A DNA stretch of 64,000 nt from Carpediemonas membranifera BICM. Its lineage: Eukaryota; Protista; Fornicata. Positions 15,093-64,000 of the stretch are shown here, in pieces (positions within the stretch are counted from its first letter, which is position 1; every line of letters starts with the position of its first letter). The notes below the pieces were generated by a model that did no database searches, had not been told where the DNA came from, and saw only the letters and a program-made list of their open reading frames with translations. Location: contig JAHDYR010000020.1 in the NCBI GenBank assembly GCA_019828565.1, positions 62,001 through 126,000 on the forward strand. The letters run 5' to 3'. Made by a program: the position numbers and the translations under genes.

Positions 15093-15623
15093 TTACGCCT
15101 TGTCGAGCTGTACCACCTCTACCAGCGACAGGCCGCCGTACAATTGGTTCGGCACGGCTCTTGCCAACGTACTAGGGTTGGCCTTGTTCACGTCGTCGGT
15201 CACCGCGTCGGCCATTTGGATCATCGGCTTGGGGACGATGACGTGACGGCCAGGGTGCTGGGCGGCAACGCGAGCAGCTCGCTCTTTGAGGTCTGCGATG
15301 GAAACACAAGCCATTCCGCTGATGAATGGGTTGATATCTGGGTTTGCACGAGATCTCATGGCTCTCGAGATGTACTTGATCGTCGTCTTGTGGGTCTGAA
15401 GCATGTGGGTCTTCAAAGCCGAAACTGATGCAAAAGTCTTGTGGCAGGATCTTGATTGGCAACGGAAATGCACAGCGCGTTGATGGAATTGCAGCGTGCG
15501 CTCGTCAACGAACTCACGGTCACAATACCAGCAGAACGGCTTCAAAAGAAGCTTTTTCTTCTTGTGATTCGACTTCTCGGTCATTTTGCCTTTCGATTTG
15601 GCATTGAGCTCTCTTGTCGACAT
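15093..15623 (-). CDS. ZNF207/BuGZ-like C2H2 zinc finger protein
   Basis: KKKK..KPFCWYCDREFVDERTLQFHQRAVHFRC...CHK. Confidence 0.85.
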   Translation of the reverse strand: MSTRELNAKSKGKMTEKSNHKKKKLLLKPFCWYCDREFVDERTLQFHQRAVHFRCQSRSCHKTFASVSALKTHMLQTHKTTIKYISRAMRSRANPDINPFISGMACVSIADLKERAARVAAQHPGRHVIVPKPMIQMADAVTDDVNKANPSTLARAVPNQLYGGLSLVEVVQLDKA

Positions 15624-15626
15624 TTG

Positions 15627-15988
15627 TGTTGCGCAGTATAAACGCGCGGTTTTGCTGATGTTTACGTGAGCGTATATAAAAAAAAAGCGGAGTCAGCGTG
15701 GAGGCGCTTCGGCGCCCCGCAATGGGTGAATAATTGTATGTACATGTTTACATACAATCGAGTAAATTCATAAATTGAGTGTAAACACATTGTTTTTCGA
15801 ACCTCCAAGACAGGCCCTGAAAGGAACGATCAAAGTGCCAAACTGTACAACATAATCCGTCCGTAGACGAATGTTGGCGGTTAGCCAATTGATGATACTG
15901 GAATGAAGTTGGAAGACGTGGGATCAATGTGCGACTGAATGGAGAGCCACTGAGCTCATCTTCCGTGGCAAGAGAACGCCACAGGATG
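15627..15988 (-). mobile_element. Fanzor element family A, 3'-end fragment (last codons, candidate omegaRNA scaffold, terminus)
   Basis: 15782-15988 is near-identical to 63556-63756; both share the TGTTGCGCAGTATAAAC terminus. Confidence 0.8.
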
Positions 15989-16297
15989 CCGCGAGCCCCC
16001 GAGACCCGTATCGGGCTGCGGGAAATCCCCTACCTGGGGTGCTTAGTGAGTGGCACCGGTGTCCGCATTGACCCAGACCGCCTGAACTCACTCGACCCGC
16101 TGATAGTCCCCAAGACCGTGGAGGCTGCACACCATCTGGTCCGTGTGTTTGGATTCATCCGACGCGTCCGCTTGTTCGACCCCCTTGAGAGGAAGAAGAA
16201 CGGTGAAGACGTGCCTGAGGCTGAGCTGGCTGGCGCTCTGGACGCGCTGAGGCCCAGAAAGCAGGGCCCAAGTAAATTAGCTCATATAAACGCCTGA
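15987..16297 (+). pseudogene. Ty3/Gypsy-type reverse transcriptase C-terminal relic
   Basis: IGLREIPYLGCLVSGTGVRIDPDRLNSL....PKT...FGFIRR resembles the Gypsy F...EV.YLG..IS..G...DP.K..AI....P.T...YYRR motif. Confidence 0.7.
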
Positions 16298-38019: not shown

Positions 38020-38086
38020 TTTGGGCTATGTAGTTCTCCTTCTGAGAATCCTTCCAAGCGCAATAGCAGAACGTGCACTTTAAGGT

Positions 38087-38204
38087 TGTTGCGCAGGCAG
38101 GGGGGCTTACCGCCAACATTCGTCCTGACGGATGATATTGTACAGTTTGGCACTTATATCGTTCCTTTCAGGCCCTGTCTTGGAGGTTCGATCACTGCAC
38201 AACA
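38087..38204 (+). mobile_element. Miniature non-coding Fanzor-A derivative bounded by imperfect inverted repeats
   Basis: 38109-38191 is the reverse complement of the 63.57-63.65 kb module; flanked by TGTTGCGCAG and CTGCACAACA; no TSD seen. Confidence 0.7.
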
Positions 38205-38568
38205 GCGCAGGGGACTCGAAGAAGGCACATTGTACCCCGGGCGACAGATCTATACAGTATATACGCTGTTCTCTCATATTGCCGCGTTTTTTTGATTTCG
38301 CAATTCTGCGCCAAACTATGGCGCGAAGAATTGGTCGCAAGCGATGTCCCACAAATATTTGCGACACCGATTGTGTGCTCTAAAGCGACAAACAAACAAT
38401 TGGGGGCTTTAATAATTAACAGGGGTCGACACCAATGTGTCGAGCTGATTGGATTGCCAATCAAATTATGAATGACACTTGACAACGGGCCGGAAATCAC
38501 CGCCAGCAGACGACCATCGCTGTCACTAAAGAAATGTGTAACACTGCTGAAACAACAGGACAGCACCG

Positions 38569-42926: not shown

Positions 42927-43175
42927 TCAGTCCTTTCTCTGGGTGTAGTACGATGCACTGGGGAGCGGAGGCATGAAGTGCTTATACCAGTCTGTATAAG
43001 AGGCAACAAGCGTTAAAACGAACTGATGACGTTCTCACGGTGCTTCACACCGGAATCGTGGTCTCGGCGAGCACTCATAGAGTCGTGAGCAAGGTAAACT
43101 GTGTTAGTGCATCACATAGCCGTAGCATGCTAACATACCGTCACAGTACGGACAGTAATAACGATTCTTCGTCAT
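42927..43175 (-). CDS. SNRPC: U1 snRNP protein C (not in the ORF track); introns 43099-43138 and 42992-43023
   Basis: Spliced MTKNRYYCPYCDVYLAHDSMSARRDHDSGVKHRENVINWYKHFMPPLPSASYYTQRKD matches the U1-C zinc finger YCDYCD.YL.HDS.S.R..H..G.KH.ENV. Confidence 0.9.
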
Positions 43176-43184
43176 TTTAATCGA

Positions 43185-43320
43185 AGGGTTTTTGAATGAA
43201 GTATCATAATGTGCACAGTGCAAGCACTGCGTCTCTCCACTTCAATTAGCTTGCCCGGAGGCGAAGACAAGCGGCTGGTTAGCCATAATTGGTGTATTGG
43301 GGTTATAGTTGGGAAGACGG
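43185..43320 (-). ncRNA. Candidate omegaRNA scaffold of Fanzor family B
   Basis: Overlaps the ORF end; shares CGTCTTCC.AACT...GGCTAACC.GCC with family A, followed by hairpins GCTTGTCT/GGGCAAGC and CAGTG-CTTG-CACTG. Confidence 0.55.
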
Positions 43321-44815
43321 GCTGGAGGTCTTGGATTTCTGAAAGCACTGGCTTGATGCTGTGCATCCGTCATGAGGCCGCAATCCAAGATGTTCTGTGC
43401 AGCAGTCTTGTCTCTGTGGGAGAGATTGAGCCAAGTGGTGGTACACTTTCTCGTCCCCTCGTTGATGATCTGAACGATGTTCTCATGGACAAACCTAATC
43501 GACTGTTTGAGAGCCTCTAGACTTGTCGTTTTGAACGATGCTGCGCTCATATTCACGCGGAAAGAGGGGGTGGCAGTGTAGCCACACTTAGCGAGTACGC
43601 CAGATACACTCTGCCCGTCTGGGCGGCGGATCGTGTAGCCGCCCAGCGACCGAGCACCAGGGTCGAAGCCCATGAGAGCTTGAATGTCCGGGGCAGGAGT
43701 AGCCTCGGCGTCATCCTGACAGAGCCGAGCCCGCTTGTTGCTGCTACCCTTTTTGTACGTGGGCCGTTCAGCCACCCGACCGCCACGGTATTTCTCGCGA
43801 ACCACCCAAACCGTCACAGCAACAGAGACCCCGTCAGTCTTCACAGAGAGCACTCTGCGGAGCTTGGTGATGTCGCCGTGATCACGCTCGTATCTATCAA
43901 CCTGCTCGTCGGTCAAGTTGCTCTTCGCTGACCAATCCCGATAGACACGGAGGCGCCTCTTCATCGCTGGGGTGAGCGACATATAACCGTACTCGATGGT
44001 CATGAACCCAGGCCTGACCGGCGCCATCGGCACGAACGGAACGAGCTTCGGCTCTGGCAGGGCCTGACTGAGCTCGAGGTTCACGGCACGAGTGAGTGTG
44101 ACCAGCTTGGTCACTGCAGCACTCATGCGCGTGACGCACGACAGCACGCCGACAAGGGCCTCGGCCACGGTACCAGTGCGACCCACCCGTTGCCCCTCGG
44201 GCGATGCATGCATTTGACGATGATGCATGCCATGATCGGCGGCTATGGCGGCAACCTCAGTGTCGAGCTCGCCTTGGGTGTCGAGAAAATCCTGTCGAAC
44301 ACCCGGCCGATCATGGAGGAGCGGACGCACCCGTTCTAATCCAGCACGAAGACGGGTCAGGTACCCGGGTGACGCGCGCGAGAGCCAGACCCGGGTGGCT
44401 GTGGAGTACTCGCCCAACCAGCTCTGAAATGGCGCTGCAATTCCAACGTAGGCTTCCCTGAAGTCCCGGACGAGTGGGGTTATGTCAGGGTCCCTCCACA
44501 TCTCCAGGTCGCCAATCCACCTGCACCGATCCGCTGCCTTTGCCTTCGACACCTTTTGCTGAGCAATGCTGACGATCTGCTTGAGGACCTCCTGGTCGAA
44601 CAGGTTGACCGTCCTCGGTGGGTCAACGCGTGCGCAGATGCAGAGACGCACGCAAGCAGGCAAGTGAATGTGTACTTAGCCTGCGTGAGAGAACGCATGC
44701 CGGGTTCAAGATTTCCTCGCCGCGGCGCGTTGTTATCGCCTCCACCGTTAATCTCGCCAATGGCCTTGTTAACGGAAGCCTTCACCGTGTATATCTTGGA
44801 AGGTATTGGAGTCTA
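43242..44815 (-). pseudogene. Fanzor1-like (TnpB/Cas12-related) nuclease, family B; frameshifted near 44660 and internally deleted
   Basis: SVKTDGVSVAV, RuvC-I MGFDPG, RuvC-III HRDKTAAQNIL; N-terminal IYTVKASVNKAI in another frame; zinc finger missing. Confidence 0.8.
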
Positions 44816-62882: not shown

Positions 62883-63509
62883 TCACCACGACCTGGGGGG
62901 CTCCGGGACAACCATGTTCCTCATCGGACTCCTGCTCTTGGGGTCGACCTTGAGGCCCTCTGTGACGTCCGTGTGGAAGCAGTGGCGGCAGACGGCGACG
63001 TACATGTCCGCACCGCCAATCACCTCGACGTCGGTGTCTGCCGTGATCCGTCTGGAGAAGGGCGCGTTCCTCCCGCAGATGTGGCAGACGGCGCTGAGCT
63101 TCGTGACATGCTCAGCCCGGGGAAGCAGGTCAATCACACGCGACGGGAAGGGGTCGCGGCGGAAGGTACCGTCCAGCGCGGCCACGATGACGTGTTTGCC
63201 GGCGTTGGCCATGTCGTCTGCGAACTGGACAATGTCGGGGAAGAACTGGCCCTCGTCGATGCCGATGACCTCGGCGTCAAGGGCTGCATCGAGGATTGAG
63301 AACAGATTGTCCGTCGGAATCGCCGGCAACTTGTGCCCTACATGCGTTGATACCTCATTGTTAGCTGTGTAGCGCGTATCCTTGGAGTATTTGATGACGA
63401 GGACCTTTCGTCCAGCTAGTTGCTGTCTGTCGCACAATCTAATCAGCTCTGTCGTCTTTCCACTGAACATTGGCCCGAATACGAGCGTTATTGACCCTCC
63501 GAAGTTCAT
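62883..63509 (-). CDS. TK1: Thymidine kinase (TK1 type)
   Basis: GPMFSGKTTEL, IGIDEGQFF, VIVAALDGTF.R.PF, KL.AVC..C, IGGAD.Y...CR.C. Confidence 0.95.
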   Translation of the reverse strand: MNFGGSITLVFGPMFSGKTTELIRLCDRQQLAGRKVLVIKYSKDTRYTANNEVSTHVGHKLPAIPTDNLFSILDAALDAEVIGIDEGQFFPDIVQFADDMANAGKHVIVAALDGTFRRDPFPSRVIDLLPRAEHVTKLSAVCHICGRNAPFSRRITADTDVEVIGGADMYVAVCRHCFHTDVTEGLKVDPKSRSPMRNMVVPEPPRSW

Positions 63510-63544
63510 GGATGGCGATTCCTTGTGATGGCGCAATTCGATCC

Positions 63545-64000
63545 TGTTGCGCAGTATAAACACATTTTTCGAACCTCCAAGACAGGGCCTGAAAGGAACG
63601 ATCAAAGTGCCAAACTGTACAATATCATCCGTCCGTAGACGAATGTTGGCGGTTAGCCAATTGATGATACTGGAATGAAGTTTGAAGACGTGGGATGTGC
63701 GACTGAACGGAGAGCCACTGAGCTCATCTTCCGTGGCAAGAGAACGCCACAGGATGTTCTCTGCAGCACTCTTGTCCCGATGATCAACATTCGGAGCATC
63801 AGGAATTGTTGCGCGCCACTGAGCACCACGGCACTGTCGATTTTCGCAGAGCATCACACGATGTGGGTGAACGTGCTGGTCATCACGCGGACGAACTCGC
63901 TTGTAGGTGGCGTGGCAGTGAGGGCAGACGACGGTGGTGCGATCCTCGTTAACCATGTTAAGATCGACGACAATGTTATACCCCTTGAGAAGGGAACTAT
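63545..64000 (-). mobile_element. Fanzor element family A: nuclease C-terminus (frame open to the window edge), candidate omegaRNA and terminus
   Basis: VNEDRTTVVCPHC (Glu plus first CxxC), CENRQC, RuvC-III HRDKSAAENIL; the 3' module is repeated at 15.8 and 38.1 kb. Confidence 0.85.

Follow-up and report, generated by a model that had tools for sequence, protein, structure and literature searches.

Near one end of a 64,000-nt stretch of the Carpediemonas membranifera genome (contig JAHDYR010000020.1, here C21, positions 62,001 to 126,000; hereafter the window), one reading frame carries the catalytic C-terminus of a Fanzor-type nuclease and runs on into a complete thymidine kinase (TK). Does this frame mark a working nuclease, does it encode a nuclease-kinase chimera, or does a mobile element merely happen to lie in phase with a host gene? 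An earlier note, made from the letters of the window, had proposed a potentially active RNA-guided nuclease locus and a possible nuclease-TK chimera, joined by a 4-nt deletion. We examined the locus together with the adjoining DNA (L009, C21:124500-134499) and searched the assembly (24.2 Mb, 69 contigs) for related sequences. The locus is very probably a dead, non-autonomous, internally deleted copy of a Fanzor1 element, inserted 35 bp upstream of the TK ATG and belonging to a C. membranifera Fanzor1 element family that we label family A.

Composition of the copy beside the thymidine kinase gene

On the minus strand, the frame that ends at the TK stop (62883) stays open past the window edge and comprises 431 codons with the adjoining DNA (L009 384..1679). 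Its first ATG in the window, at 63956, opens an open reading frame (ORF) of 357 amino acids (aa; 62883..63956, minus strand). Pfam PF00265 matches the 431-codon frame at E=1.5e-59 (residues 228-401, profile positions 1-176 of 176), and the TK domain is thus full-length, with its P-loop and Cys pairs in place. The upstream part of the 357-aa frame reads MVNEDRTTVVCPHC...CENRQC...HRDKSAAENIL (also written LLKGYNIVVDLNMVNEDRTTVVCPHC...CENRQC...HRDKSAAENIL) and retains a catalytic-type Glu, four Cys and the RuvC-III Asp (HRDK). On these points the earlier note had read the locus correctly: the frame is open from the window edge into full-length TK, the Glu, Cys and Asp are of Fanzor type, and the remnant is Fanzor-derived.

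The element adjoining TK is 828 bp long and extends from 63545 in the window to C21:126372 (L009 1046-1873), ending 372 bp past the window edge. It consists of nt 1-201 and 1578-2213 of the 2213-bp reference copy L022; nt 202-1577 (~1.4 kb) are gone, and the surviving part of the gene starts at ...QKHFARCGQQLAREFG. The RuvC-I motif FDPGARS occupies element nt 1322-1342, within the deleted interval, and none of the frames of the 828-bp copy contains a DPG motif. Because RuvC-I and most of the gene are deleted, this copy is not a nuclease gene, and the idea of a potentially active nuclease locus, which the note itself had made to depend on an untruncated upstream sequence with RuvC-I, has to be given up. 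The adjoining DNA, where the note had suggested looking for RuvC-I, the N-terminus, the left end and a transposase, holds a left terminus that is damaged (GAATGCAC in place of the TGTGCTATTGAAGG seen in other copies), and the 2.2-kb element carries no transposase gene, not even in its longest copies.

The features of the locus within the window are as follows.

62883..63509, minus strand: thymidine kinase coding sequence, 208 aa plus stop; ATG 63509-63507, stop 62885-62883; intact, one of three paralogues
63510..63544, minus strand: TK leader, 35 nt from the right end of the element to the ATG, from junction alignments
63545..64000, minus strand: in-window part of the 828-bp non-autonomous element, from comparison with longer copies
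63545..63578, minus strand: right terminal repeat, ending ...GTGTTTATACTGCGCAACA; copy ends align and flanks beyond diverge
63545..63724, minus strand: structured, omegaRNA-like 3' region, overlapping the end of the Fanzor ORF and running to the right end
63625..63627, minus strand: native Fanzor stop TGA, out of frame here; copies with the 4 nt end ...SSTDG and stop there
63696..63697, minus strand: site of the 4-nt deletion, GCAC/ATCCC versus GCACATTGATCCC
63700..63992, minus strand: Fanzor C-terminal coding remnant in its true frame, LLKGYNIVVDLNMVNEDRTT-CPHC-...-CENRQC-...-HRDKSAAENILWRSL...SRT
63991..63992, minus strand: 1-nt deletion in a C run, shifting the frame between ...AREIVP and LLKGYNIV (frames 0 and 2)

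The coding remnant contains the relocated RuvC-II Glu, the zinc finger and the RuvC-III Asp. The sequence ...GCGCAACA is the common end of every copy, beyond which flanks diverge, and the left end (L009 1845-1873, outside the window) repeats about 33 nt of the right terminal repeat in direct orientation. The first 5 nt of the TK leader, GGATC (63544-63540), are the right-hand copy of a target-site duplication, and GGATC is also found just outside the left end.

Two small deletions shape the frame. At 63696/63697 the TK copy joins GCAC directly to ATCCC, where both the copy at 15.9 kb in the window and a copy beside a second TK gene on contig C1 read GCACAT(T/C)GATCCC. Where a copy retains the 4 nt, its frame reads ...LIPRLPTSFQYHQLANRQHSSTDG up to a stop at the position that corresponds to TGA 63627-63625. 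Because of the deletion this native stop is missed and the frame joins that of TK, just as the note had described. After the deletion the element frame is stop-free to the right end and continues in phase through the 35-nt leader, which contains no stops and is in phase with TK. The second deletion lies at the C run at 63991..63992, where other copies have an extra base; the open frame departs from the Fanzor frame upstream of ~63991.

Under the reading that we favor, the copy would have been mobilized in trans by machinery encoded outside the element. Its continuous frame would be a by-product of a stop-free element frame meeting a short stop-free leader in phase, and TK, which keeps its own ATG (63509) as the note had stated, would be translated from there. 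At most, the locus might supply an omegaRNA-like transcript usable by the nucleases of longer copies.

A divergent family of Fanzor1 elements

Family A is abundant: the assembly contains at least 40 DNA matches at 95-99% identity and 156 protein-level matches. The window alone holds four Fanzor-derived loci (15.6-16.0, 38.1, 43.1-44.8 and 63.5-64.4 kb), in line with the high-copy family that the note had expected. The long copies are L022 (2213 bp), L028 (~2264 bp, full length) and L023 and L025 (~1.9 kb each). Derivatives have varied breakpoints, for example 1-110/1271-2213, 1-237/905-2213 and 1-113/393-664/1714-2213. In a 5'-truncated copy at C15:243 kb (L024 3587-6598) the Fanzor frame runs into an 838-codon downstream ORF, giving a frame of 1004 codons.

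The long copies carry a single open frame of 585-719 codons that extends from RuvC-I through the C-terminus. Its motifs are, in order, MGFDPGARS (RuvC-I), the Gly-rich KVFYGSSGF, NEDRTT-CPHC...C...C and HRDKSAAEN (RuvC-III), and it ends in ...LIPRLPTSFQYHQLANRQHSSTDG and a stop. MGFDPGARS is invariant in a 12-sequence alignment (A2). The Gly-rich KVFYGSSGF occupies the position of the RuvC-II Glu in canonical TnpB; in N-E-DRTTVV-CPHC six residues separate the Glu from the first Cys, and the segment aligns with DEYKTSSVCPRC of SpuFz1. A Glu six residues ahead of the zinc finger distinguishes Fanzor from canonical TnpB, according to a recent review (PMC13565253). An alignment of full-length members with remote Fanzor relatives (A6) leaves a Glu, a Thr, three Cys, an Asp and an Asn invariant. 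Family A as a whole thus has the RuvC-I Asp, the RuvC-II Glu and the RuvC-III Asp, and the catalytic D, E and D together with the Cys are conserved across three Carpediemonas families and the remote relatives.

We then compared family A with known proteins. Among 5.8 billion proteins, a word-indexed search turned up relatives in C. membranifera only, in at least three families with 35-50% mutual identity. Searching 1.84 billion cluster representatives with a profile gave five remote hits (E 4e-8 to 7e-4), one of which matches SpuFz1 directly, and the remote relatives P0051 to P0054 pass Pfam Cas12f1-like_TNB (PF07282) at 30-38 bits. The A6 profile, built from C-terminal halves and relatives, matches SpuFz1 (E=1.5e-14) along 250 positions that reach from RuvC-I to the C-terminus, followed by PpFz1 (1e-10) and GtFz1 (4.8e-8); Cas12f (1.5e-5) and TnpB-like proteins rank lower. 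Language-model neighbors in the ESM Atlas are giant-virus clusters with DUF8286 or Cas12f1-like_TNB (score 0.98). A single-sequence search of the PDB with the Carpediemonas protein returned no match.

Because of the profile matches to solved Fanzor1 structures and the placement of the Glu, we assign family A, from its sequences, to Fanzor1. It shares with the known Fanzor1 proteins (SpuFz1 8GKH, PpFz1 9CF0, GtFz1 9CER) the DPG of RuvC-I, a Gly at the canonical RuvC-II site, the Glu six residues before a CxxC...C...C zinc finger, the RuvC-III RDxxAAxN and a 3' region that is structured and conserved as far as the end of the element. It differs from them in being very divergent, with close relatives in Carpediemonas only, and the TK copy differs further in having no RuvC-I.

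Insertion sites and the two thymidine kinase paralogues

Family-A copies start with TGTGCTATTGAAGG-GTCGAACAATGTGTTTATACTGCGCAACA and end in ...GGAGG-TTCGAACAATGTGTTTATACTGCGCAACA, with a direct terminal repeat of ~33-43 nt and TGT...ACA ends. Matching 5-bp duplications border nearly all copies. At a fixed offset, exactly 5 bp upstream of the duplication, nearly all copies are also accompanied by the host motif YGCAGKTTWAGG. In left flanks picked blind to the motif, GCAN stands at this offset in 20 of 22, and at the N10 spacing the motif is found at 53 genomic left ends as against 0 for the control. The TK locus follows the same layout, GCAGCTTTGCG-CGGTT-[GGATC]-element-[GGATC]-30 nt-ATG, in which GCAGCTTTGCG is a variant of YGCAGKTTWAGG; the 828-bp element lies in the same orientation as TK, 35 bp ahead of its ATG.

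The genome carries three TK paralogues (window 62883-63509; L040 3542-4168 on C1; L003 1502-2125 on C17). Their coding sequences (CDSs) are 95.5-96% identical, and their flanks are 56-64% identical or unalignable, a contrast that suggests gene conversion or strong constraint on the coding sequence alone. The C1 paralogue also carries an element, at the same offset from the motif as in C21: GCAGTTTTGCG-CGGTC-[CCCAA]-element-[CCCAA]-33 nt-ATG. This element is a different derivative (1-113/393-664/1714-2213) that keeps the 4 nt. The third paralogue, on C17, has a degenerate motif and no element.

The non-coding flanks of the C21 and C1 loci, at 56-64% identity, contain clear homologous blocks, while the elements are 95-99% like the family and the CDSs are 96% identical. 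Since the flanks have diverged, the elements are young, and both the duplications (GGATC versus CCCAA) and the derivatives differ, we take the two insertions to be independent, motif-targeted and younger than the TK paralogues. We rejected one ancestral insertion that preceded the duplication of TK, on the divergence of the flanks (56-64%) relative to the elements (95-99%) and on the different duplications. Gene conversion of the element between paralogues was likewise discarded, as both flanking 5-mer copies differ between the loci. We also considered TK as part of a larger mobile unit and set this aside: weak paralogy extends on both sides, and the upstream 750 bp match other loci.

Because two long-diverged TK flanks each took a young copy at the same motif offset, with a different duplication and a different derivative, the paralogue pair offers direct evidence that the transposase-less family-A elements choose their sites by sequence motif. 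The second paralogue, with its different derivative and different 5-bp duplication at the same GCAG-TTT motif offset, is the new observation here.

The motif itself is common. The 11-mer GCAGTTTAAGG occurs 298 times in the genome, compared with 3 occurrences of the reversed control; in places it stands a few nt ahead of an ATG, and several occurrences are coding (QFK) or lie in other repeats. Part of the 298 come from two other repeat families, whose downstream sequences start with TTTTGGTTTTTGACC... and ACAAGGAGCATTTC... A role as a general promoter signal is not borne out: among 146 long ORFs the motif lies within 100 nt upstream of the first ATG in 3, versus 1 of 146 in controls. The geometry of motif, N5 and duplication does not fit a simple target-adjacent motif abutting a guide match. 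The left terminus of the element, GCTATTGAAGG, matches the host motif at 8 of 11 positions.

Solo terminal repeats are found across the genome, with at least 18 candidates among the matches listed. At one of them (L027 279-321) a left-end-type repeat is followed by flank, with AGAAT on both sides. They look as if two direct terminal repeats had recombined. L023 and L025 (C65:306 kb and 329 kb) are inverted copies 22 kb apart, and the CTCAC to the left of one equals the 5-mer to the right of the other; an inversion by recombination between the two would fit this arrangement, but the reciprocal 5-mer pair is mismatched.

Alternative readings of the locus

The alternative that survives best, possible but on balance doubtful, is that the remnant serves as an RNA-only module. 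Its scaffold, with the TK leader as guide, would be loaded in trans by Fanzor proteins from longer copies, protecting or re-homing the insertion, and the terminal repeat might give TK a transcription start. The last 180 nt fold at -50.1 kcal/mol (z = -3.16), a value that 1 of 200 shuffles equals, and the 3' region is kept in every deletion derivative; a 108-bp mini-element in the window has little else. Copies with open frames of 585-719 codons from RuvC-I to the C-terminus exist, and the omegaRNAs of known Fanzor1 systems begin at the ORF's 3' end and extend into 14-15 nt of flanking sequence (PMC13565253). Against this, the copies are 95-99% alike and offer no covariation, an intact ATG-initiated full-length family-A gene is not demonstrated, and the damaged left terminus means that excision or re-homing may no longer apply. 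An Rfam search of the 3' region found no match. The retained region may simply be a cis-sequence for transposition: it would fit a trans-usable omegaRNA module and a sequence needed in cis equally well. The mini-element (38096-38203, within 38075-38210) is flanked on either side by GCGCA as its duplication and has the motif GCACTTTAAGG together with a spacer of 5 nt.

A wider proposal concerns how the family inserts. Insertion 5 bp downstream of YGCAGKTTWAGG, in one orientation and just ahead of genes, would be directed by the elements' own Fanzor/RNA machinery and not by a classical transposase; the terminal repeat would replace the displaced promoter, so that genes like TK stay expressed, and the pair of TK paralogues would amount to a natural replicate. 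We hold this to be improbable as a whole.

The supposed chimera has a much smaller chance of being real. It would be a 357-aa protein initiated at ATG 63956, in which the zinc-finger and RuvC-III remnant had been exapted as an N-terminal extension of the kinase. The frame is indeed continuous with an in-frame ATG, and the last ~50 element codons are in phase with TK at both element-bearing paralogues. In C1, however, the TK frame is open for 96 codons into the element and continues upstream in a non-Fanzor frame. Since the upstream frames thus differ between C21 and C1, no common TK extension is conserved. A ribosome scanning a transcript that entered from the left would first meet the ATG of a 93-codon ORF (L009 1636), which overlaps ATG 63956. 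Exact look-up in a collection of 15 billion proteins found neither the 357-aa nor the 305-aa read-through product, but did find, for each of the three paralogues, the TK of 208/209 aa. In public protein collections the exact 208-aa product is accompanied by KAG9394174.1 and KAG9395255.1, which carry the name thymidine kinase, and public annotation places the start at the own ATG in all three paralogues (208/209-aa models). Of the nuclease-TK chimera, then, the open frame stands and the protein finds no counterpart in public collections.

The history of the 4-nt deletion bears on the same question. Three other copies (L004, L005 and L007) match the TK copy at 98.3-98.9% identity and have the internal breakpoints and the 4-nt deletion in common with it; L005 and L007 have their own matching 5-nt flanks (AAGCG and CCTCC, respectively), and L004 lies in different flanks. 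In a census of 24 distinct family-A copies sampled, 12 are full at the 4-nt site, 2 are shorter by 2 nt, 3 lack the 4 nt and 7 are unscored, with L007 as a further deleted copy. Because these three copies at other sites have both, the 4-nt and internal deletions pre-existed in the source copy. The 4-nt deletion thus marks an 828-bp subfamily that went on moving, its origin lying elsewhere than at the TK locus. The continuity of the frame accordingly stems from a deletion inherited from the source copy, and read-through frames occur at unrelated copies too. We take the fusion to be a chance read-through of a stop-free element frame into an in-phase host leader, an accident of reading frames that is not to be pursued as a chimeric enzyme.

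Slightly less credible still is the notion that both the 4-nt deletion and the 1-nt shift are long-read assembly errors and that no real read-through exists. The genome was obtained with a nanopore sequencer and long-read assembly (PMC8516963), and the 1-nt difference does fall within a C homopolymer. The 4-nt difference, however, is outside any homopolymer, common to four copies that were assembled separately, and missing from 14 or more others; given this distribution it is a subfamily pattern and not random error. Finally, an active or recently active Fanzor gene with its N-terminal part in the next window has practically nothing to recommend it beyond the intact C-terminal catalytic motifs, as RuvC-I is deleted and the element ends 372 bp past the window edge, where 750 bp of unrelated sequence and then a different gene follow.

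Several observations do weigh against the reading of the locus as a dead Fanzor1 derivative whose frame meets TK by chance. The Carpediemonas proteins score 12-15.5 bits against PF07282, short of its 26.3-bit threshold, and direct Pfam and NCBIfam scans of them also stay below threshold. The A6 profile takes in four remote relatives from outside Carpediemonas, which may drive part of the match to Fanzor1. An AlphaFold2 model of the full-length protein, built on a 10-sequence alignment, had a mean predicted local distance difference test score of 44, with the RuvC half below 50, and was not used. The elements encode no transposase, and their mobilization would depend on an enzyme from elsewhere. 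The 1-nt shift at ~63991 may be a sequencing or assembly error because the site is a homopolymer. Both TK insertions are in the same phase (35 and 38 nt), which is a 1-in-3 coincidence or a hint of selection. Lastly, Logan contigs from public runs, of which it is uncertain whether any is RNA, end at the repeat and fail to span the junction between element and TK, leaving room for use of ATG 63956.

Taken as a dead Fanzor1 derivative, the TK copy resembles the Ac/Ds-type non-autonomous elements: both termini are kept, the middle is lost with many different breakpoints, and derivatives reach new sites. Family A differs in that its termini are direct repeats of ~33-43 nt (TGT...ACA) and not inverted, and in that the longest copies encode no transposase. 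Ty3-like long terminal repeat (LTR) elements and elements with Tn7/Mu-type ends are integrase-type and site-targeted. By analogy, family A is similar to them in its 5-bp duplication, TG...CA termini, direct terminal repeats, solos and fixed-distance motif. It differs in that its repeats are only ~40 nt long and its cargo is a Fanzor gene in sense orientation; inspection of family A by eye revealed no reverse transcriptase, integrase, primer-binding site or polypurine tract. With the IS200/IS605-IS607 TnpB elements it shares a TnpB-family nuclease and an RNA, predicted here, at the right end. According to PMC13565253, the IS200/IS605-IS607 elements leave their target unduplicated and carry hairpins at their ends, next to a target of 4-5 nt; in family A there is a duplication of 5 bp, and the 11-nt motif lies 5 bp from it.

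The C21 locus is of modest interest, an ordinary dead derivative of an unusual and apparently undescribed Fanzor1 element family, and it is the targeting at the level of the family that deserves follow-up. The searchable literature yielded no report of Fanzor elements in Carpediemonas or in any other metamonad, and C. membranifera is not among the organisms in the accessible part of the supplementary files of one survey. A search by terms of the 2026 review (PMC13565253) found no description of motif-targeted insertion. C. membranifera has been reported to be without canonical replication and segregation complexes (PMC8516963), and hundreds of recent copies of an RNA-guided nuclease element in such a genome are of some interest.

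Two of the other Fanzor-derived loci in the window differ from the TK copy in kind. The locus at 43143-44806 (minus strand) belongs to another family and is a near-full-length Fanzor; it shares 75-85% identity with P0018 and P0012 and has a C-terminal end of the P0011 type. It may be a recombinant, and it is the sole possibly coding-competent Fanzor gene in the window. The copy at 15.9 kb (15620-16002) is a family-A 3' fragment only, in which an insert of ~140 bp interrupts the right terminal repeat with GTGTTTAYACT on both sides. Next to the TK copy, beyond its left end, pieces of 110-177 bp from L009 1874-2621 (C21:126373-127120) recur at 95% identity at C1:1.807 Mb and C54:1.330 Mb and belong to another repeat.

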